From IMG/VR virus record IMGVR_UViG_3300037042_006844, positions 62,001 through 126,000 of that record: 64,000 nt of DNA. One strand, written 5' to 3'. Shown here in pieces: positions 10,191 to 62,544 of the stretch (positions are counted from its first letter, which is position 1; every line of letters starts with the position of its first letter). A program made the position numbers and the translations under genes. The notes below the pieces were generated by a model, which made no database searches, was not told the origin of the DNA, and saw only the letters and a list, made by a program, of their open reading frames with translations.

Positions 10191-10571
10191 TGGACGTAAC
10201 GGGAGTTGAACCCGTGTCTTTAAGAACTGTTAGCTCCGGACTACATGTGTATGCAGTTTGAATTTGTTAGGAAATGCAATCGAAACTACCAAAAATGCAC
10301 TTCTTAGGATTTGCTGTATTTCGATTGAAACCACAGATCAACTTTTTCAATCATAGTTCGTAAATGACATTTGTTTCGGCTACCGAACGATCACCGAACA
10401 AACGGACAACCTTTATTAGGCTGCAACTGCTGCGACATTCTCGTAAGAGAAGTCATAGCTCACTACATTTTCCTTAGCGGTTAATGTTTAGATAGATTTT
10501 TTAGGAAGCCAACTATCATCTTCCACATGCCCATTGCGAACGCACTCTTAAATCGAAACCAGTATACGCCC
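10191..10571 (-). ncRNA. ssrA: tmRNA, tag peptide AKENVVSYDFSYENVAAVAA*
   Basis: Acceptor GGGCGTA/TACGTCC with G3.U70, T arm GGGTTCAACTCCC, tag ORF 10478-10416 ending AA*; CCA not encoded. Confidence 0.92.
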
Positions 10572-17211: not shown

Positions 17212-17285
17212 TGGTAGGCAGTAGTGGAGTCGAACCACTCATTTACGGATGTAAACCGAACGTTATACCGATTAACTAACCGCCC
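17212..17285 (-). tRNA. tRNA-Val(TAC)
   Basis: cloverleaf, CCA. Confidence 0.88.
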
Positions 17286-26230: not shown

Positions 26231-26998
26231 TCAAAAAAGTCTGCCACCGTGGGATTTCAGATGATCGACCAACCTTTGGTTCTCCGTATAATAACCCAAC
26301 CCTAGATTTTTATACCGAGCCAATTTTGTTTCTTCTTTTTCAAGCAAATTTCCAAACCATTTGAAATGGTGGGTCAAAGATGACTTTTTGAATTGATAGT
26401 TTAGCCAACTATAACCGTCTCTGCAATGCTCTGACACTTTGTAGTATTCTGTCCAATGATGCCCTTCCCAAATTGCTATTGGTTGTTTGACAATCGAAAT
26501 TTTTTCATCGCACGCCCATAGCAACGATTTTGTGATATTCGTTTGATTCGGAAATTGCTCCCATATCGTTGGAGTAGGTGTTATGTGCAACGGAATGCTG
26601 CCATCGTGAGTGGTGCGGTCAACGAGCGTTCCTCTCAAAAAATCGGTGTTGAATAAATCCATATCGTGGATCAAATCGTGAACATTATCATACCCAGGAA
26701 CAACGTGAAACTCATCCAAATCAGCTGGAATATACCAATCATTCGGAGATAATTCTTCTCGGATGCGGTTTGCAAATGCCGCTTCTGGTGCTCCGCTCAA
26801 CGGTTCATCATACGATTTACATAGTCGAATAGTAGGATCATTGTATTGAGCGATTTGATCCCATACAGGGTTATTTACACCATTCCAAATTCCCAATACG
26901 AAATTGGTCACTCCAAACTTCTTATAGTGATCTAGGAAATGAGGAAGTAACTCTATATTAGTATGAATCGAGCAAATAACGGTGATATTTATTGGCAT
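26231..26998 (-). CDS. glycosyltransferase family 2-like protein
   Basis: Close paralog of 24722-25459. Confidence 0.8.
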   Translation of the reverse strand: MPINITVICSIHTNIELLPHFLDHYKKFGVTNFVLGIWNGVNNPVWDQIAQYNDPTIRLCKSYDEPLSGAPEAAFANRIREELSPNDWYIPADLDEFHVVPGYDNVHDLIHDMDLFNTDFLRGTLVDRTTHDGSIPLHITPTPTIWEQFPNQTNITKSLLWACDEKISIVKQPIAIWEGHHWTEYYKVSEHCRDGYSWLNYQFKKSSLTHHFKWFGNLLEKEETKLARYKNLGLGYYTENQRLVDHLKSHGGRLF

Positions 26999-30768: not shown

Positions 30769-30842
30769 TGGTGGCAATGGCGGGACTTGAACCCACAACT
30801 TGTGCAGTTATCAACGCACTACTCTAATTGAGTTACATCGCC
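30769..30842 (-). tRNA. tRNA-Ile(GAT)
   Basis: cloverleaf, bulged anticodon stem. Confidence 0.72.
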
Positions 30843-33443: not shown

Positions 33444-33590
33444 GTAACTACTAAAATTGTTCCACGTTATTTGGCAAGAAGGTGGACAAACTTACCCGTG
33501 ACGTTCTCGCTCTCTGGGTCTCGTCATGCGCTTGGACTTTGAATTTAAGGGTTATTCCAAGTAACCTGTGTTTCCTTAGCTTTCGGAAAT

Positions 33591-33667
33591 TGGAGCATCG
33601 TGTGGGTAACGCTCCCACTCAGTATCTTGTTTGGAAGACAAGTGCCTCACTTCTCAGCCAACGATGC
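33591..33667 (-). tRNA. tRNA-Gly(TCC)
   Basis: cloverleaf, U73. Confidence 0.8.
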
Positions 33668-33677
33668 GTTTATAAAA

Positions 33678-33753
33678 TGGCATCCACCATAGGAATCGAA
33701 CCTACCCACTGAGATTTGGAGTCTCTGTCGCCAGCCTTGGAACATGGGTGGAT
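33678..33753 (-). tRNA. tRNA-Trp(CCA)
   Basis: ctCCAaa, G73. Confidence 0.8.
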
Positions 33754-33764
33754 ATATCATAAAT

Positions 33765-33840
33765 TGGTGGTCCAGTAGGGAGTTAAACCCTAAATTCAAC
33801 GTTCGTAATGTTGTGTGATATTCAGTTTCACCACCGGACC
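33765..33840 (-). tRNA. tRNA-Arg(ACG)
   Basis: cloverleaf, CCA. Confidence 0.78.
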
Positions 33841-33845
33841 GTAAA

Positions 33846-33920
33846 TGGTAGTCTATGTGGGTGCTGCCCCCACGTTTCCAGTTTGAAAAACTAGCGAACT
33901 AGCTGATGTTCGAATAGACC
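33846..33920 (-). tRNA. tRNA-Glu(TTC)
   Basis: cloverleaf, atypical T loop. Confidence 0.78.
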
Positions 33921-33929
33921 ATTGTAAAT

Positions 33930-34006
33930 TGGAAACCCCACTTGGATTCACACCAAGGTTTCTGGCTCAGAGCACACAGAAGTCCTAATCACTAGACGAT
34001 AGGGTT
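33930..34006 (-). tRNA. Glu-like tRNA body with expanded 12-nt anticodon loop
   Basis: TTCTG-TGTGCTCTGAGC-CAGAA; acceptor and CCA intact. Confidence 0.5.
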
Positions 34007-34010
34007 AAAT

Positions 34011-34086
34011 TGGCAACCTCACTCGGAGTCGAACCGAGTTCCCCGGACTGAGAATCCAGAATCCTTTCCTATTAGACGATGAGGTC
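34011..34086 (-). tRNA. tRNA-Glu(CTC)
   Basis: cloverleaf, CCA. Confidence 0.9.
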
Positions 34087-34095
34087 GTTGTAAAT

Positions 34096-34187
34096 TGGAG
34101 CCTCCAGTCAGACTCGAACTGACAAAGGATGATTAATCCATTCTTGATTACAAATCAAGGCCGATAACCAATTCCGGGCATGGAGGC
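34096..34187 (-). tRNA. tRNA-Thr(TGT) with long variable arm
   Basis: ttTGTaa, extra arm GGATTAATCATCC. Confidence 0.8.
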
Positions 34188-34253
34188 AGTAAATTTTCTA
34201 TACTTTATTTATGGAAATTACCTCAGTAATTCCGTCATCGCCCTATGTATATA

Positions 34254-34853
34254 TTATTTCTTAATCACGCAAGTAAGGCTTGCGTTAAGATGAAATGTTC
34301 CATCACGATTGTAGTGATGCCGTTCACGAAATTCGCTGCGAATTGCATTCAATGCAGCATCTTGCGAATCGAGATCGTTTGCGAGAAAATCATAAGTAGT
34401 TGGCAGTCTGTCAACATACTCTGATCCCGCAGCAAAAGATGTGTGTAAATCCTCCATCACAAAATATCCATTGGGCTTAACTTTTGGCCAATAATATTTC
34501 AACGCATCTTGCTGATGTGACATGTAATGACTTCCGTCATCCATCATGATATCAATCTCGCCATCTGCAAACGTGCTGTAAACTTCTTCCAGCAAAGCGT
34601 TTTTCGTAATGTAAACAAAACGATCATGTAACGGAACCTCTGGACGATAGCCGCAATCAATTCCGTAGATGGTTGCGTTTGGAAAATATTCCAACCATGT
34701 TTGAGTGCTCGCCCCAAAATAAACACCGATTTCAACTACTTTTCGAACGTCATATCGAATCGGTCCAAAAAACTGCTCGTAAAAATCCATGTATCTGTGA
34801 CCCCAGGCTTTATCAGTCTGGTATTTTATTCCAATGTCTTGTAGTAATCCCAT
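34254..34853 (-). CDS. class I SAM methyltransferase
   Basis: TDK..H.Y, VEIGV, DDGSH, MEDL. Confidence 0.85.
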   Translation of the reverse strand: MGLLQDIGIKYQTDKAWGHRYMDFYEQFFGPIRYDVRKVVEIGVYFGASTQTWLEYFPNATIYGIDCGYRPEVPLHDRFVYITKNALLEEVYSTFADGEIDIMMDDGSHYMSHQQDALKYYWPKVKPNGYFVMEDLHTSFAAGSEYVDRLPTTYDFLANDLDSQDAALNAIRSEFRERHHYNRDGTFHLNASLTCVIKK

Positions 34854-34884
34854 ATACTATTAAATAGTGTCATTTGAAATTAAA

Positions 34885-35529
34885 CTATAGTTTTTCAATC
34901 ACACAAGTAATACTGCTCGGATAGTGGAACGTTCCGTCACGATTATAAAAATGTTTTGCACCAAACTCCGTGTCACGGATGTTGTTCAACTCAGCGTCTT
35001 GCGTAACGGCATTGTTTTTCAAAAAATCATAAGTGGTTGGTAATCGATCTCGATTTGCGAGCAGCCTTCGCTGTGAAGGTGGCAGACAACTTTCGGAATC
35101 TGCTCGTATGGCGGATGTGGATAAATCTTCCATCACAAAATAGCCGCCATGTTTGATCTTTGACCAGTAAAATTTAATTGCGTCGTGCTGATGTGATATT
35201 TTATGACTACCATCATCAATCAGAATATCGATGTCATTATCGGTGAATGAAGAATAAACTTCTTCCAGCAAAGCGTTTTTCGTAACGTAAACAAATCTGT
35301 CATGTGGAGAAACTAATTCGCAGTGTATGCAATCGATTCCATAAATCGTGGCGTTTGGAAAATAATCCAACCACACTCTGATACTGGAACCACGATGCAC
35401 ACCAATCTCAATAACTTTGCGGACATCAAACCGTATCGGACCAAAAAATTGTTCATAGAAATCCATGTATTTGTGATACGTGGCTTTGTCAGTTTGATAT
35501 TGCATTCCTAAATCGTGAAGTAAACCCAT
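34885..35529 (-). CDS. class I SAM methyltransferase (tandem paralog)
   Basis: Highly similar to 34254-34853. Confidence 0.85.
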   Translation of the reverse strand: MGLLHDLGMQYQTDKATYHKYMDFYEQFFGPIRFDVRKVIEIGVHRGSSIRVWLDYFPNATIYGIDCIHCELVSPHDRFVYVTKNALLEEVYSSFTDNDIDILIDDGSHKISHQHDAIKFYWSKIKHGGYFVMEDLSTSAIRADSESCLPPSQRRLLANRDRLPTTYDFLKNNAVTQDAELNNIRDTEFGAKHFYNRDGTFHYPSSITCVIEKL

Positions 35530-35567
35530 GCTGTATACATATACAGAAAATAGCGATCTCAACCGCA

Positions 35568-35685
35568 CTTTCATCGCCCTATGGGTTCTGCTTTCGGCAT
35601 AACACCCACGGACCAATCAATTGATTTTCCCAGACTTTACCTTTTTCACTGGCGGCGGCTCAACAGATGGAGTTTCAAGCCCGTT
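35568..35685 (-). ncRNA. conserved structured leader of tRNA array 2
   Basis: Second copy of 17320-17420 element. Confidence 0.6.
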
Positions 35686-35701
35686 TCTAAATTGTTCTTA
35701 C

Positions 35702-35821
35702 AGTCTATCAGCTTTTTATCACTTGTCAACTGTCTTTTTTCGCTCACCTTTCGGCTCGCTCGTTGGTCAACCTTTCGTCGCTCAACTATAATAATCTTAT
35801 CACACTTCCTATCACTGTCAA
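35702..35821 (-). promoter_or_regulatory. tandem sigma70 promoters of tRNA array 2
   Basis: TTGACA-16-TAAGAT (35821-35794) and TTGACA-16-TAGACT (35729-35702). Confidence 0.7.
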
Positions 35822-35846
35822 CGATCTTCTTTCAAAAAAATTCCAA

Positions 35847-35986
35847 CAAAAAACCGTCACTCATTTCTGGGTGACGGTTGATATTCTTTCTTCAGTTATG
35901 TATACAAAATATCAGCGTCCACCCTTTCTTGTAAAGGTGGTATTATACCAATCACGCTTAATGTCATGTTTACAAACGACTTGCAT
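35847..35986 (-). promoter_or_regulatory. leader-peptide attenuator 2 (MQVVCKHDIKRDWYNTTFTRKGGR*)
   Basis: ORF 35986-35912; protector hairpin, antiterminator over stop codon, terminator AACCGTCAC/GTGACGGTT + U tract. Confidence 0.8.
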
Positions 35987-36017
35987 ACACAAATATATAT
36001 CTGCGACTTTGCGAAAC

Positions 36018-36881
36018 TTAACGTTTTTTTGCAGATTTTTTCGCTCTACGCAATTCTAATGCAACTGCTTCTCTCACAAGAGATTTCAACTCAGCAGAAG
36101 TAATTGTTTCGCCCATTGCTTCTGGATCGGGGTCTCCTCCGTATGGGTCGCCGTATCCAAATGGTGATGGTTCATCACTACGCACACGATATTCTGGTCC
36201 ACGGCCTGGCTCATCGCGATCAATGTTTGGAGTTTTGTGGCGTTTTTCGTAAAACCTTGGATATGCATGAGGAAGATCAGCATAAACCAATTCTGGGTCG
36301 ATTTTGATGTTGAAACGCAAAACACCTTTGCCAGTCATCTTGCTGGTATCAACATTCCTCCAATTGTTATCGATCACCGTAACACCAGAAGTTCCGTCAA
36401 CAAGTTTAATAGCTTCCAATTCATCTTTGATTTTTTTGGCTGCTTGGCTCCAAACTTTTGGGTTGATGCCGTCCACATAAAAATTGATTGTGCCATTTTT
36501 ATCAAACGCAGAATCACCATCTGGCGACATCCAAGTAGGAGACAATTTAGCTTGGGGATCGGCATTTTTAATGAACGTCCACACACTATCGTCGATATCG
36601 TGAATAACGTTGAGCACACCAGCAGAATCATCTGGCATACTATAATCCGTAGATTCGTCCACAGACTTCGATCCTTTTAATTTTGCAAGCTTCTTCTTTA
36701 GCATCGCTACATATCGCTCGACTGAGCCATAGTTTTTCTTGGCGAATGCCTTGGGTGGATTTGCAATTAATGCCTCTAGGCTTTTAATGTCGGCGGCAGA
36801 ATCATCCGCTGCCCCTTTACCTTTGTATTCTTCGGCAATCAATGCACGGAGCAGTTTTTTAAGTTGGTCTTTTTTGGTCAT
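36018..36881 (-). CDS. hypothetical protein
   Basis: LKKLLRALIAEE and LKSLVRE motifs common in huge-phage virion proteins. Confidence 0.7.
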   Translation of the reverse strand: MTKKDQLKKLLRALIAEEYKGKGAADDSAADIKSLEALIANPPKAFAKKNYGSVERYVAMLKKKLAKLKGSKSVDESTDYSMPDDSAGVLNVIHDIDDSVWTFIKNADPQAKLSPTWMSPDGDSAFDKNGTINFYVDGINPKVWSQAAKKIKDELEAIKLVDGTSGVTVIDNNWRNVDTSKMTGKGVLRFNIKIDPELVYADLPHAYPRFYEKRHKTPNIDRDEPGRGPEYRVRSDEPSPFGYGDPYGGDPDPEAMGETITSAELKSLVREAVALELRRAKKSAKKR

Positions 36882-36978
36882 AAATTTGGTTTCTTAACTA
36901 GTTTACGAAAATCCTTAGCGTCCATAATTTATAAATATAACAACAAAACGAATTCTTACCGAAAATCAATCAAAATGA

Positions 36979-38148
36979 TCACACACCAGCAATGTGCTTA
37001 AAAGCGTCCGTATAAACATTCTTATCGAATATGCTATTACCCGACGCATCCATCAAATCGTCGATTTTCATTTTGTTTAAGAAATAGTCGTCTGTGATCG
37101 CAAAATTTTCTTCGTATGCTGGAACAAATTGTGCAAACTCGGCGTTGTTTTTGACCACATCAAATATGAGTTTATAAACATAATAGCGTCGATAGATTTC
37201 CAACACAGTGCTATGATATCCCGAATCTTTAATATAGTGGTCCATTTCTGAAAATATAGACTGCTCCAACAAGTTCGTCTGCTTGAATGCGAACCTATAC
37301 AAACACGAAGCACTTCCAATGTGATATTGGAATTGTTGCAACATCAACGCTTGTGGATTTGGCTGCAAATGCCAATTTCGGACGTGGTATCCGCCATGAA
37401 AATAATACGCAAACTGATCTTCATATGTGGGTGTTCCCGCAGCATATGTTTGTAAATCGTGTGCTTTATTGATCCGATTAAGAAGCTCAGATGAAAATTT
37501 GACAAACGTGTCCATTGCGGTTTCTATTTCAAACGTATATGGCCTGCCACGCAAAACAATTTGATCCCCTGGCATGTGGCTATGTGCTTCCAGAATATCG
37601 TTTGGATTGAAACACGATTTGCGAATCAAAAGAGTTGTTGGTTGAAAATGCGGAAATGTAAACGGCCTTAAATTTTCGAACAGATTATCTTCCTGCATAA
37701 TTTGTCGTTCGAAACTGATAAAATGCTCGTTATTGGTGCAGCCACGGGTCGCCCCCACAACATCCAAATCATTACTACCGATGCGGCGCATGAAACGCTG
37801 CAACAAATCAGCGTTCAATATAAAATCGTCATCTTCCATGATCAATATTGTATCACGAATCTCCGCCCAATGTTTTTCAAGCAAATATCGAATGTTGACT
37901 CCGTGATTTGCCATTGTCGGTTCGAGAAAATCAAACGTTACAGCTGGGTCGTTGGCACTCAGCCCAGTAAAAAAGTCACGAACAATTTTCAGTTCGGCAT
38001 CGTCTCTTCGATCCGGCCCCTCCGAAACAGCAATAAAAAGGTTGTCGAATAACGGATTCAATCTGGCTCTCCAGTTAAGTATTCGGAGATACATCAACAA
38101 TGGATCGCTCACAGAAATCAACAACTGCGTGGAGTTTTTAACGTTCAT
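36979..38148 (-). CDS. GT-A fold glycosyltransferase-like protein
   Basis: ILIMEDDDFI; paralog of 23454-24611. Confidence 0.55.
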   Translation of the reverse strand: MNVKNSTQLLISVSDPLLMYLRILNWRARLNPLFDNLFIAVSEGPDRRDDAELKIVRDFFTGLSANDPAVTFDFLEPTMANHGVNIRYLLEKHWAEIRDTILIMEDDDFILNADLLQRFMRRIGSNDLDVVGATRGCTNNEHFISFERQIMQEDNLFENLRPFTFPHFQPTTLLIRKSCFNPNDILEAHSHMPGDQIVLRGRPYTFEIETAMDTFVKFSSELLNRINKAHDLQTYAAGTPTYEDQFAYYFHGGYHVRNWHLQPNPQALMLQQFQYHIGSASCLYRFAFKQTNLLEQSIFSEMDHYIKDSGYHSTVLEIYRRYYVYKLIFDVVKNNAEFAQFVPAYEENFAITDDYFLNKMKIDDLMDASGNSIFDKNVYTDAFKHIAGV

Positions 38149-38188: not shown

Positions 38189-38995
38189 ATGAAACGAGAT
38201 ATCGCCATATTCACCATAGTTAAAAACGAACCATATTTTCTTCCGAAATGGATCGAATATTATAGCAAATCGTTCGACAAACGCGACATGTATGTATTGG
38301 ACAACGAAAGCACAGACGGCAGCACCAACAATTTGTGCGTCAACGTTGAGAAAGTTATTACCGCCAGTGTAAACCCAAACAACCTCAATTACATTTGGAT
38401 AACTGACGTGGTCAAAGCACAATTTCAAAAGCTTTTGAACTCTTATAATTATGTTTTCTATGTTGACGTTGATGAATTCGTCATTTCCACCGAAACTCCA
38501 AATCTACGCAATTATTTGGACAGACAGATTGCCGAAGGCAGAAAATGCTTCATATCCAACGGTTGGTTTCTGATCCACTATCCCGAAAAAAACGAGATCG
38601 GTTTTGACTACAACAAATCAATGTTGAGTCAACGCCAATATGCGTATCAATTTAATCACTATGACAAGCCGTTTTGCGCAAACTACTTTTTGGATTTTGC
38701 CGCTGGGCAGCATTTTGCCCACACCGAACTTCCCTATTCCAGCACAAGACGCACCGACCCAGAAATATTATTGCTCCACGCCAAATTGTTTGATATGGAA
38801 TACAGCGTTAATCGCTATAAACAACAAATGCACATGTTTGACCAAATCGAGCCTGGAGTTTTTGACAACGACCACCATTGGATCATTAAAAAAGAGTATG
38901 ATTCGTTTTTAGATTATCATTACAAACATCGGTTTGATGATACCGTGGAGCATTTGGAACAGTTGTTGCATTACGATTACACAAACCTATTCTGA
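38189..38995 (+). CDS. glycosyltransferase family 2-like protein
   Basis: TIVKNE..FLPKWIEYY, DNESTDGST, VDVDEF. Confidence 0.88.
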   Translation: MKRDIAIFTIVKNEPYFLPKWIEYYSKSFDKRDMYVLDNESTDGSTNNLCVNVEKVITASVNPNNLNYIWITDVVKAQFQKLLNSYNYVFYVDVDEFVISTETPNLRNYLDRQIAEGRKCFISNGWFLIHYPEKNEIGFDYNKSMLSQRQYAYQFNHYDKPFCANYFLDFAAGQHFAHTELPYSSTRRTDPEILLLHAKLFDMEYSVNRYKQQMHMFDQIEPGVFDNDHHWIIKKEYDSFLDYHYKHRFDDTVEHLEQLLHYDYTNLF

Positions 38996-38999
38996 CCAC

Positions 39000-39794
39000 A
39001 TGAAAAAAGATGTCGCCATATTTACGATAGTCAAAAACGAACCCTACTTTCTTCCGAAGTGGATCAAATACTACAGTCAATTTTTTGATAAATGCGACAT
39101 GTCGGTTCTCGATGACGCGACCAATGATGGCAGCACCGACAATCTTGACATCGACGTAGTGAAACTGCCAATCCGCAGCAAACTTGATTACGGACAGAAC
39201 GGATTCTATATCAGAGAGCGGTTTGCGCAATTATTGGAAAGATACCATTACGTGTTCTGCACAGACGTAGATGAATTCATTACTCCGACTCACTCACCCA
39301 ATCTGAGGATGTATATTGACAACGAAATTTCTACAGGCAGAAACTGTTTTATTGCCACAGGATGGATAATTGTTCACTATCCAGAAAAAGGCGATTTCGC
39401 GTTTGATTATACAAAACCCATATTGAACCAACGGCAGAACGTCAATGATTCTCCGCCATACAATAAACCTTACGGTGCCAACTATGTTTTGAGCTACAAC
39501 ATTGGTCAACACACAGCATCCAATGAACAACCATATTCACAAGAACAGCGCAGTGATCCAAACGTCATTTTAATTCACGCCAAGTTATTTGACATGGATT
39601 TTAGCATCAATCGTTACCGCCACACATTCAGAACATACGATACCATATTGCCAACGGTCCCCGCAATAGAAAAAGATTTTGTTCTGCATGGCGAAGATGC
39701 CGAATTTATCAAATATCATTACACACAACGCTTCAATGGAACTGTGCGTAATTTGGATAAACTGTTGTATTTCGATTTCAAAAACATGTTCTAG
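39000..39794 (+). CDS. glycosyltransferase family 2-like protein (tandem paralog)
   Basis: same motifs. Confidence 0.88.
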   Translation: MKKDVAIFTIVKNEPYFLPKWIKYYSQFFDKCDMSVLDDATNDGSTDNLDIDVVKLPIRSKLDYGQNGFYIRERFAQLLERYHYVFCTDVDEFITPTHSPNLRMYIDNEISTGRNCFIATGWIIVHYPEKGDFAFDYTKPILNQRQNVNDSPPYNKPYGANYVLSYNIGQHTASNEQPYSQEQRSDPNVILIHAKLFDMDFSINRYRHTFRTYDTILPTVPAIEKDFVLHGEDAEFIKYHYTQRFNGTVRNLDKLLYFDFKNMF

Positions 39795-39894: not shown

Positions 39895-40914
39895 CTATTT
39901 ATCGTTGAGCAAATAGTTGTTGCTGATTGCTTTGAAACTGAAATTCTCGGTCAATCCTCGAACGACCACACCTTCACGATCTGCGTTTGGATTCAACATG
40001 CTTTTTCCATCTGCATACGCCAACATGTTGTCCACCAAAGCCTCGGCGGGTAATACATAAGCCCACTCCATGACTGGAACCATGTTCAACTTTAACGTTT
40101 CCAATGTATCTTTCAACTCGCTCACAGTCATTCTACGACCTTCGTCGATGTAATATCCCGTAAAGAAAAACACTGTGCGTTTGGCCAATCCGTATAAATT
40201 ACCTTGAATGCCTGGACCAACCAATTCACCTTGCAACGCAATGTTTTTACGCAACTCGGTCAACTTCCCTGGCATTTGTAGTTCATTTGCTGCTTGCCAG
40301 AACGCATTTCCCTCACTGGGTTTCAATTCGAGGTTTCGGCTGCATACTCCAAACTCACCGTTGCGAAAATATGCGGTAAAACTTGAACCGTCCAATTTTT
40401 CAGTAACATATGCATTTTGCCCCCGCAAATCAATCATACAATCACTTGCATAATTCTGAATACGTTCCTCGTCGGTCTTTGGAATAAAAGAAGGAAACCA
40501 TCCCTTTACTTCTCCAGACAATTGTGCTGGACCTCCAGCTTCGTATTTTATCACGTTCAATGCCACGGTTAAATCATCTCCCTCTTTTAGATTAGGAAGG
40601 CTCCAAGGCAGCGGAGTCAATAGACCTTGAGAAATTTGTCCACACAAACGAACAGTTTTCAAACGAAATCCCTCTTGTCCATTTGCCATTTTTTTGAAGC
40701 AACGTGCTCTCAAAAATTCAAATTGCGGCATTACTGGCAAAAAACTGTCGATCTCATAATAAACAGCAAGATCGCCCACGTTAAATTCATTCTTTTTGAC
40801 AACAACTTTCCATCCCTTGACAGTTGCTACAACAATAGCGTCAGCACCAACAATGGGTTGAATGTCGAGGATTTTAACTACACTGGCTAATTTACGTTCT
40901 GGTTCCATACACAT
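39895..40914 (-). CDS. ATP-dependent RNA ligase, DRB0094/Rnl5-like family
   Basis: RKLAS N-domain, YEIDS, KTDEERIQN, TEKLDGSS, QGELVGPGIQGN, EGVV, FKAISN. Confidence 0.92.
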   Translation of the reverse strand: MCMEPERKLASVVKILDIQPIVGADAIVVATVKGWKVVVKKNEFNVGDLAVYYEIDSFLPVMPQFEFLRARCFKKMANGQEGFRLKTVRLCGQISQGLLTPLPWSLPNLKEGDDLTVALNVIKYEAGGPAQLSGEVKGWFPSFIPKTDEERIQNYASDCMIDLRGQNAYVTEKLDGSSFTAYFRNGEFGVCSRNLELKPSEGNAFWQAANELQMPGKLTELRKNIALQGELVGPGIQGNLYGLAKRTVFFFTGYYIDEGRRMTVSELKDTLETLKLNMVPVMEWAYVLPAEALVDNMLAYADGKSMLNPNADREGVVVRGLTENFSFKAISNNYLLNDK

Positions 40915-47775: not shown

Positions 47776-48402
47776 ATATATGTTCAGACCAGTTTGAAAA
47801 AAATGCCCGAATGGATCGTGGAGACAGATTACATGTTTCCGACTTCCGCGATGAGTCCCAACAGTTCATAGGGAATTAAACAGGACTCGCTAAACAGCTA
47901 AAACAACCATTATTTCCCATTGATTAGCCCATTCGGTAAATCAATTTAGCTGGCAGTAATCCATCTGGTGTATGTATTACATTTATGACGTATGGTGAAT
48001 TTCGGATTCCAGCCGAACTCAGTCCTCTAGCGTCTATTACCAGCCAAAGCCAAAAATTAAATTTGAGGATTTCACGCTTTATTCGTTCCGAATGAAGGGC
48101 TTTGACCCATATACCCCACTGGAGGGCGGGTGCTTTAGATTTAAGCTACATCGTCTATCTCAAAAAAATTGGTGGATGCTATCGTGACCCTTACGCCGGA
48201 TTTTTACCGGAGCAACATAATCTAACCCGTGGCAAAACGGAGATAACCTATGCTGCTACTCAAAGAAGGATCTGTGGTTTGCAATCACTTAGCCTTCTAA
48301 AAAATCAATATAGAGCTTTTCAACCCGCCCACTGAAGGGCTATGCTTAATCTTACATCACGCAAGGAATCACCCCTGGTGAAAGAGGCTCTATAAAATTG
48401 AA

Positions 48403-48473
48403 TGATGTCGGTGGGACTCGAACCCACATCAAGCCCTTGAACGGGCTTCTCTACCATTGAGCTACACACATCA
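48403..48473 (-). ncRNA. tRNA-like RNA, 6-nt anticodon loop, no CCA
   Basis: canonical D and T arms, arm AAGCCC-GTTCAA-GGGCTT. Confidence 0.5.
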
Positions 48474-61185: not shown

Positions 61186-62544
61186 ATGAATTTGGATCAA
61201 TTGCTTGAACCTCAACGGGATCATGCTGTGCGTGGTCTCAACAGTCTGTTGCTCAACGGTGCTTTTGCCGATTTGAGCGAAACCGGTTGTGGCAAGACTT
61301 ATGTCGCATCATGGCTCGCCAAACACCTAAACGTCCCCGTGGTTGTCGTTTGCCCGAAAGTGGTCAAGCGCAACTGGACCAAAGTTTTGGGGTCGTTTGG
61401 CATCAAAGCCAATGTCGTTATCAATTTTGAGCTTCTCATGCGCGGCAACACTCCGCATTTGACGTTTAAGAATGGGAAGGACGACAACTCCAGTTTCTAT
61501 CAGATTCACTTCCCCAAGGATGCCCTTATCATCATCGATGAGGTTCACAAGTGCAAGGGTTGGAACAGCAAGAACAGCGATTTTCTGGTTGCTTGCAAGC
61601 AACAAGGTTTCAAGCTGTTGCTGTTGAGCGCAACTGCTGCGACCAATCCTTTGGAGATGCGTTCTTTTGGGTTTGCAACTCTGCTGCACGATCTCACGAA
61701 TTTTCGCAAGTTTCTGGCAGATGCTGGTGCATACACCAGTCGTTTCGGTGGATACCAGATTGATTTGACTTGTGACCGGACGCTCAAAGCGATGGGCAAC
61801 ATGCACCTTGATTTGTTCACCAAGCTGGAAATTGCTGGACGTATGACCCGCAAACAATTTGGCAAGATTTTCCCGGATAATCGGGTGATTGCCGATGCGT
61901 TTGACATGGGGACCAATACCGCCAAGATTCAGAAAGTGTATGAAATCATGGAGCGGGAGCTTGCGCAACTCGAAGAATCGAGCCGTCATTATAAGGAACA
62001 CCAGTTCGCTATCATGACCAAAGCTCGTCGTCTGGCGGAACTGCTCAAGGTTCCCACGATGGTCGAGATGATTGAGGATCTATTCGATGAAGGCATCAGC
62101 CCCGTTTGTTTCGTAAACTACACCGAGACTGTGGATGCGATTCGAAGCAAGCTGGAAAAGAACAGCAAGCTGGCGAATCACCTCAACTTTATTGTTGGTG
62201 GTCAGAGCGAAAAGGTGCGCAATGCTGGCATCGATGCTTTCCAGAACAATACTCGTCGGATCATGATTGCCAACCTTGCAGCTGGCAACGCGGGTGTGGA
62301 TTTGCACGATTTGCTGGGCGGGCATGGTCGTCATTCGATCATCAGCCCGAGCTTTAGCGCGATTCATTTGATCCAGGCTCTGGGTCGTATTCACCGTGCA
62401 GAGGGCAAAACCCCTTGCATCCAAACGATTCTGTTTGCTCTTGGCACGATTGAGGAAGTGGCATGTAAACGAGTTCAAGCCAAGATTAACAACACCGACA
62501 TGTTGAATGACGGTGATTTGACTAGTGGTATCAAGATTATATAA
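61186..62544 (+). CDS. superfamily 2 (SNF2-like) helicase
   Basis: TGCGKT, DEVH, SAT, QALGRIHR. Confidence 0.9.
   Translation: MNLDQLLEPQRDHAVRGLNSLLLNGAFADLSETGCGKTYVASWLAKHLNVPVVVVCPKVVKRNWTKVLGSFGIKANVVINFELLMRGNTPHLTFKNGKDDNSSFYQIHFPKDALIIIDEVHKCKGWNSKNSDFLVACKQQGFKLLLLSATAATNPLEMRSFGFATLLHDLTNFRKFLADAGAYTSRFGGYQIDLTCDRTLKAMGNMHLDLFTKLEIAGRMTRKQFGKIFPDNRVIADAFDMGTNTAKIQKVYEIMERELAQLEESSRHYKEHQFAIMTKARRLAELLKVPTMVEMIEDLFDEGISPVCFVNYTETVDAIRSKLEKNSKLANHLNFIVGGQSEKVRNAGIDAFQNNTRRIMIANLAAGNAGVDLHDLLGGHGRHSIISPSFSAIHLIQALGRIHRAEGKTPCIQTILFALGTIEEVACKRVQAKINNTDMLNDGDLTSGIKII

Follow-up and report, generated by a model that had tools for sequence, protein, structure and literature searches.

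Leader-peptide attenuators of transcription are exemplified by the trp operon of E. coli, where a short translated leader ORF (trpL) is followed by three mutually exclusive pairings (1:2, 2:3 and 3:4), the last of which is an intrinsic terminator with a U tract, and where the stop codon lies next to or on segment 2, so that a terminating ribosome favours the terminator. Similar leaders tie the expression of decoding components or amino-acid supply to decoding speed, as in pheST and in the thr and pheA leaders, and thrL and pheL carry long runs of the sensed codon (pheL is discussed in PMC3082878). In the mef(E)/mel element, a non-repetitive leader peptide controls attenuation of antibiotic-resistance genes in response to ribosome-targeting drugs (PMC4335068). 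T-box riboswitches link attenuation to tRNA status through an antiterminator/terminator switch, but bind tRNA directly and have no leader ORF. In Sinorhizobium meliloti, the released attenuator RNA rnTrpL and its leader peptide peTrpL can both have functions in trans (PMC6614838, PMC7968998).

Here we analyse a putative element of this kind, identified from sequence alone, in a giant phage and about 80 relatives, where it lies upstream of the phage tRNA gene array. In its inferred working principle it is closest to the trp-type leader-peptide attenuator. It shares with trpL a short ORF inferred to be translated, three predicted alternative pairings, a stop codon on segment 2, candidate control codons about 15-25 nt upstream of segment 2 and an intrinsic terminator with a U tract. 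It differs from trpL in having no tandem identical control codons, a peptide core conserved as a sequence, no Shine-Dalgarno sequence, and a start signal 6 nt before the ATG that suggests a leaderless or near-leaderless mRNA. It also differs in its phage setting, in the two promoter-like sites and the structured RNA that follow the terminator, and in the downstream genes, which are tRNAs and not biosynthetic enzymes. The conserved Thr codons recall thrL, although this leader usually has only 3 Thr and no aminoacyl-tRNA synthetase or biosynthetic gene lies downstream. With mef(E)/mel it shares a non-repetitive leader, alternation of an antiterminator and a terminator and, by inference, a stalled ribosome as the signal instead of one amino acid, but no resistance gene is present here. 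No T-box or any other Rfam family matched the region at E<=1. The element has no sequence relationship to rnTrpL/peTrpL, although functions in trans of that kind could explain why the peptide sequence is conserved.

Architecture of the element

The window is the whole stretch of DNA analysed, 64,000 nt in length (positions 62,001 to 126,000 of the 303,564-bp viral contig IMGVR_UViG_3300037042_006844). The element lies on its minus strand, after the stop of a 287-aa gene of unknown function (36881-36018), and comprises, together with the region that follows it, these features:

36001-35993, minus strand: gene-start signal GATATATAT, 6 nt upstream of the ATG
35986-35912, minus strand: small ORF of 24 codons plus TGA (ATG at 35986, TGA at 35914-35912), MQVVCKHDIKRDWYNTTFTRKGGR, the putative leader peptide
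35940-35919, minus strand: hairpin H1, CCACCTTT (35940-35933) with AAAGGGTGG (35927-35919), inside the ORF at codons 16-23, extended by GCGTG (35957-35953) with ACGC (35918-35915)
35924-35906, minus strand: segment 2, GGGTGGACGcTGATATTTT, the 5' strand of the predicted antiterminator, which includes GGTGGACG and TGATAT and contains the TGA stop
35914-35879, minus strand: hairpin H2
35888-35869, minus strand: segment 3, AAGAATATCAacCGTCACCC, which can pair either with segment 2 (antiterminator, including H2) or with segment 4 (terminator)
35879-35848, minus strand: intrinsic terminator, AACCGTCAC (35879-35871), a 10-nt loop, GTGACGGTT (35860-35852), then T6 (35853-35848)
35821-35794, minus strand: promoter-like site P1, TTGACA-N16-TAAGAT preceded by TG
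35729-35702, minus strand: promoter-like site P2, TTGACA-N16-TAGACT preceded by TG
35681-35546, minus strand: conserved structured RNA block (35681-35571) plus a covarying hairpin (35570-35546), the inferred leader of the tRNA-array transcript
35529-34885 and 34853-34254, minus strand: two paralogous methyltransferase genes
34187-34096, minus strand: first tRNA of the array, Thr(UGU)

The observation behind the original prediction, a 24-codon leader with 1:2, 2:3 and 3:4 pairings, was confirmed, the ORF having 15 distinct amino acids and the codon pairs listed there. The minimum-free-energy fold of 35945-35840 is H1+H2+terminator at -31.0 kcal/mol (z = -4.75 against dinucleotide shuffles, beaten by 0 of 200). 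When the 3' arm of the terminator (segment 4) is blocked, the best fold is the antiterminator that had been proposed, GGTGG.ACG.TGATATTTT with AAGAATATC..CGTCACC. Two corrections are needed. A tRNA-Val(tac) gene is present in the window at 17212-17285, so that the statement that Val is absent from the array is wrong, and H1, the proposed protector, is extended by GCGTG/ACGC.

Conservation in relatives

Megablast of 34000-38000 against GenBank phages gave no match. The close relatives (L014-L018; relatives are designated by L and a number) are about 99% identical and give no information. Divergent relatives of the upstream protein (47-60% identity over part of its length) keep the whole intergenic region of about 500 nt, even where the flanking genes differ: in L019 a GP88-like gene lies upstream, and in L021 glycosyltransferases lie downstream. 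Pattern scans of viral and metagenome collections gave about 80 distinct versions, several on contigs of 100-300 kb. A scan with the 14-mer ATATCAACCGTCAC was too unspecific, the matches returned being mostly chance hits, although it gave the first four divergent members. A scan of genome contigs with the ORF-core pattern gave at least 120 matches, none of those returned being a family member, and so provided no clue to the host. A covariance model built from 37 versions aligns 81 distinct members and finds exactly one copy in the window, at 35844-36006 on the minus strand; no second copy, which the original prediction had named attenuator 1, was found at E<=0.001.

The ORF is open from a conserved ATG in 78 of 78 members and encodes 21-30 residues, with the core Y/C-x-x-I-K-R-(x)-W-(Y)-N/D-T-(T)-F-T. 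Indels upstream of the H1 3' arm are multiples of three. Pairwise Nei-Gojobori counts give pN/pS 0.43 over the first 17 codons and 0.19 in the 11-codon core, against 0.79-1.02 in the other two sense frames, both of which carry stops in all 34 sequences, and 0.75-1.49 in the antisense frames. Translation of the ORF is thus inferred from purifying selection. No Pfam-A family matched three representative peptides at E<=10, a search of low power at this length.

There is no Shine-Dalgarno sequence before the ORF, but only 3 of 42 long ORFs in the window have an SD-like sequence. Instead, many genes carry (C)TAT[AT]TA[TA] shortly before the ATG; TAT[AT]TA[TA] lies 4-7 nt before the ATG of 14 ORFs of >=100 aa, against 2% of random 30-nt windows. 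Examples are upstream of the ATGs at 26998, 25459, 12652, 11616, 34853, 32336 and 24611 (minus strand) and 22371 (plus strand). The small ORF has the same signal with a 6-nt spacer, and the motif is conserved upstream of it in relatives. It may be a phage-specific promoter producing leaderless or very short-leader mRNAs, or an AU-rich initiation signal.

Two other readings of the region were rejected. Some gene callers predict an antisense gene of 159-181 aa across it. However, the T tract at 35848-35853 is T6 in the window and T7 in the otherwise nearly identical contigs L014-L018, and this 1-nt difference creates or destroys the spurious 159-aa antisense ORF within the same species; moreover, the gene is not called in L015 or L017, antisense pN/pS is 0.75-1.49, and the stop-free runs fit a pyrimidine-rich strand. 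An extended -10 promoter inside the ORF (TGGTATAAT, 35951-35943) was also considered, but it is destroyed by an in-frame 3-nt deletion in L021, which keeps the ORF.

RNA structure and folding

The terminator-state structure (H1, H2 and terminator) pairs in 99.0% of cells, on an alignment fitted to the structure of the model. Seven pairs have changes on both sides, a count reached by 0 of 500 shuffles, and slid controls pair in only 27-49%. H1 carries most of the covariation (AU/CG/GC and CG/UA): 3 of its 7 scored pairs show double compensatory changes and 98.8% of cells pair. H2 is nearly invariant apart from G-U changes, while its loop varies and is the least conserved part. Covariation of the short CGYT/GRCG stem, checked by eye, showed no consistent pattern. 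A terminator scan finds a 12-pair stem in the window, and the GC-rich stem of 9-12 bp is followed by T6-T7. The terminator arms are identical in 15 of the 18 relatives found by a search that did not use the terminator; the three variants, plus L296, keep the pairing through compensatory changes (variants L283, L287 and L296), segments 3 and 4 changing together.

The nucleotides of segment 2, with the family consensus TGRCGG(C)TGATAT, are conserved although the reading frame over them differs (frame 0 in 21 members, frame 2 in 57). The stop codon always lies on this segment, being either the TGA of TGATAT (21 members) or a TAA/TAG 10 nt later (56), and is 27-46 nt before segment 3. The 6-bp extension that turns H2 into an antiterminator (TGRCGG with CCGTCA) can pair in 93.9% of cells, against 13-61% when slid, but shows only one-sided, pair-preserving changes (G-U/A-U and C-G/U-G); segment 3 is almost invariant, and most members were collected with a terminator-anchored pattern. 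In L296, a G-to-A change in segment 3 is matched by C-to-T in both segment 4 and segment 2, allowing a 1-nt register shift, which is a single event.

In the window, the protector is H1 extended by GCGTG/ACGC, which overlaps GGGTGGACG. In most relatives it is not H1 but a long-range pairing of codons 5-10 (TATACA.ATATTAA.CGY) with segment 2 (GRCG.TGATAT.TGTATA), which encloses H1. The central 10 pairs of this helix hold in 96.9% of cells and one lineage shows a compensatory UA-to-CG double change, although the AT-repeat content makes slid controls high at +/-2. This pairing fits the near-invariance of the synonymous sites in codons 5-8.

RNAs starting at the ATG were folded for 10 representatives. 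Transcripts ending just after segment 2 adopt 1:2 enclosing H1 in 8 of 10, and transcripts ending after segment 3 adopt H1 plus the long 2:3 helix in 5 of 10; in L050, L163 and L019, 1:2 remains the best fold at this point, and in the window and L021 other folds win, that of the window being without 2:3. The terminator is formed in all 10 full transcripts, together with 1:2 in 8 of them. In folds that included 23 nt upstream of the ATG, the full fold is about 2-12 kcal/mol more stable than the best fold with segment 4 blocked. This is the energy landscape of a classical attenuator, as predicted from sequence.

Genomic context

P1 and P2, both scoring 10/12 in a promoter scan, are sigma-70-like sites with TG-extended -10 elements (TGaTAAGAT and TGaTAGACT), conserved in position in relatives, although some (L147, L204) keep only the second. 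GTTGACA...TGATAGACT of P2 is conserved in about 40 relatives. The structured RNA behind P2, of about 135 nt, is highly conserved, and RNAalifold on 40 sequences predicts 38 pairs, 14 of them with compensatory changes. It contains an invariant palindrome AATCAATTGATT, its terminal hairpin has a CTGAGG-like loop, and in most relatives it is followed directly by the first tRNA. A search of 33500-37000 against Rfam 15 at E<=1 returned only tRNAs and weak chance hits, and the block is a candidate new leader RNA of phage tRNA arrays.

A same-strand tRNA array follows the element in 56 of the 59 members with at least 500 nt of downstream DNA, and the first tRNA detected is Thr(UGU) in 46 of these 56. 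This tRNA has the anticodon loop TTTTGTAAA, whereas its body differs between phages (75-92 nt, some with a long extra arm); in about 10 relatives, ARAGORN misses an odd tRNA-like sequence with the same loop and reports His or Arg as the first tRNA. In the window, the two methyltransferase genes (Methyltransf_24/FtsJ-like, phrog_21658, from Pfam and PHROGs) are inserted between the RNA block and the first tRNA, as in a few relatives, whereas most relatives have none here and L021 has glycosyltransferase genes instead.

ARAGORN finds at least 31 tRNA genes in the window, two tRNA-like genes with odd anticodon calls (a 4-nt 'gata' and a 2-nt 'tc'; 30769-30842 and 48402-48473) and a tmRNA gene with tag AKENVVSYDFSYENVAAVAA (10191-10571), all on the minus strand. 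Rfam finds two further tRNA-like hits not listed by ARAGORN (33594-33667 and 33681-33754, minus strand), one of them scoring weakly as tRNA-Sec. Upstream of the element, Pfam and PHROGs found nothing for the 287-aa protein or for a 389-aa protein. An RNA ligase gene (PHA02142 OB-fold plus RNA_ligase domains) and two family-2 glycosyltransferase genes lie just upstream (39895-40914, minus strand, and 38189-39794, plus strand), and the RNA ligase keeps this neighbourhood in the divergent relatives L019-L023.

Discussion

The reading that we favour, although we consider it about as likely as not, is that the element is a ribosome-dependent transcription attenuator, forming a conserved module of about 160 nt immediately upstream of the control region of the phage tRNA array. 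What the comparative data establish is an ORF under selection as a peptide and carrying the normal SD-less gene-start signal of the phage, a covarying H1, conserved alternative partners for segment 2, a stop codon on that segment, a strong intrinsic terminator and linkage to the tRNA array. The switching itself, including any dependence of termination on translation, is inferred. In this view, without a ribosome 1:2 would form, then 3:4, and transcription would stop; a ribosome that runs to the stop codon would cover segment 2, with the same outcome. A ribosome delayed within the conserved core (codons about 5-19 in the window, including Thr-Thr-Phe-Thr) would melt segment 1 and H1 but leave segment 2 free to pair with segment 3 as it emerges, so that the terminator could not form and RNA polymerase would read on across P1 and P2 into the leader RNA and the tRNA genes. 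Extra transcription of the array would thus be coupled to poor decoding, through tRNA shortage or another translation defect.

The interpretation given in the original prediction was only partly supported. The inferred translation of the short ORF, the alternative pairings ending in an intrinsic terminator, the position of the stop codon and the synteny with the tRNA array all speak for it. In contrast, the argument drawn from 15 amino-acid types is not supported, since random 24-mers of this phage's composition have 13.7 +/- 1.4 distinct residues and P(>=15) = 0.29. What is conserved is the peptide sequence and not codon diversity, which suggests either specific sensed codons or a nascent-chain effect. 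The comparison of leader codons with the tRNA set has no power, given that more than 30 tRNAs cover nearly every codon and almost any ORF would match. There is also no run of identical control codons: 65 of 78 leaders hold 3 Thr and, of all leader Thr codons, 76% are ACA, against 26% of Thr codons in the long ORFs of the window, but these sequences are related to one another and three or more Thr in 24 residues is not unusual (P = 0.20). Moreover, the two strong sigma-70-like sites P1 and P2 lie between the terminator and everything downstream, so that the tRNAs do not depend on read-through and this is not a simple operon leader.

The chief rival, which appears less likely, is a stand-alone micro-gene whose 21-27-residue peptide acts in trans on an unknown target, the terminator merely ending this small unit and shielding the tRNA promoters from upstream transcription, with the alternative pairings as by-products of mRNA structure. 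The selection on the peptide, the ORF's own gene-start signal, the position of the terminator directly before P1 and P2 and the absence of two-sided covariation in the antiterminator all speak for it. However, the C-terminal third of the peptide is not conserved and changes frame while the nucleotides beneath it (TGRCGG, TGATAT) are conserved, the stop codon is held on segment 2 in both frames, H1 covaries inside the ORF, the near-invariance of the synonymous sites of codons 5-8 fits an RNA pairing role, and the peptide matches no Pfam family. A small RNA of about 140 nt, possibly dual-function and ended by the terminator, with H2 or its loop acting by base pairing or protein binding, seems improbable, although it is compatible with the attenuator model rather than an alternative to it, and also with a micro-gene. 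The unit is compact, with a start signal and a terminator, its stems are conserved, and attenuator RNAs and leader peptides acting in trans have precedent (PMC6614838, PMC7968998), but the H2 loop, the obvious seed region, is poorly conserved, no target is known, and the coding signature indicates that translation matters.

The specific proposal that the leader samples many different codons to sense the overall supply of the phage's tRNAs is unlikely. The linkage of the element to the array and the lack of richness in any one amino acid agree with it, but the residue diversity is what random peptides give and codon variety is not what is kept. Finally, a chance ORF in the 3' untranslated region of the 287-aa gene, followed by that gene's ordinary terminator, is contradicted by the comparative data. 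The ORF does start 31 nt after the stop of that gene and the window shows no -35 element upstream of it, but the element is kept with its ORF behind unrelated genes, such as the GP88-like gene in L019, and occurs in 81 distinct sequences with a coding signature; conserved partner segments, a selected ORF and a covarying H1 precede the hairpin and U tract independently of the upstream gene.

A bolder version of the attenuator model, which is doubtful on present evidence, is that giant phages carry a translation-sensing switch that feeds back on their own tRNA supply. Ribosomes may falter on the conserved leader for lack of charged tRNA-Thr(UGU), the first tRNA of the array and the one that reads the ACA codons dominating the leader, or because host defences cut or deplete tRNAs. 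Transcription from a phage-type promoter would then read through the terminator into the leader RNA and the tRNA array, restoring decoding capacity, and this would matter most late in infection, when the host-type promoters P1 and P2 may be off.

How phages control their tRNA arrays is essentially unknown, and our literature searches found no described attenuator or leader peptide upstream of a phage tRNA cluster. The kind of mechanism is familiar; what is new is the viral setting, the SD-less micro-ORF with a conserved peptide, and the position in front of a tRNA array. In practice, the module, consisting of the micro-ORF, the terminator, tandem promoters, a novel structured RNA and tRNA-Thr(UGU), is a sequence signature that marks the start of tRNA arrays in a large group of uncultivated giant phages, and it is amenable to study with synthetic constructs. 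If the model holds, this would be a leader-peptide attenuator in a virus, built on an SD-less and probably leaderless micro-ORF, which would control decoding components and not amino-acid biosynthesis, and it suggests feedback between translation performance and phage tRNA supply.
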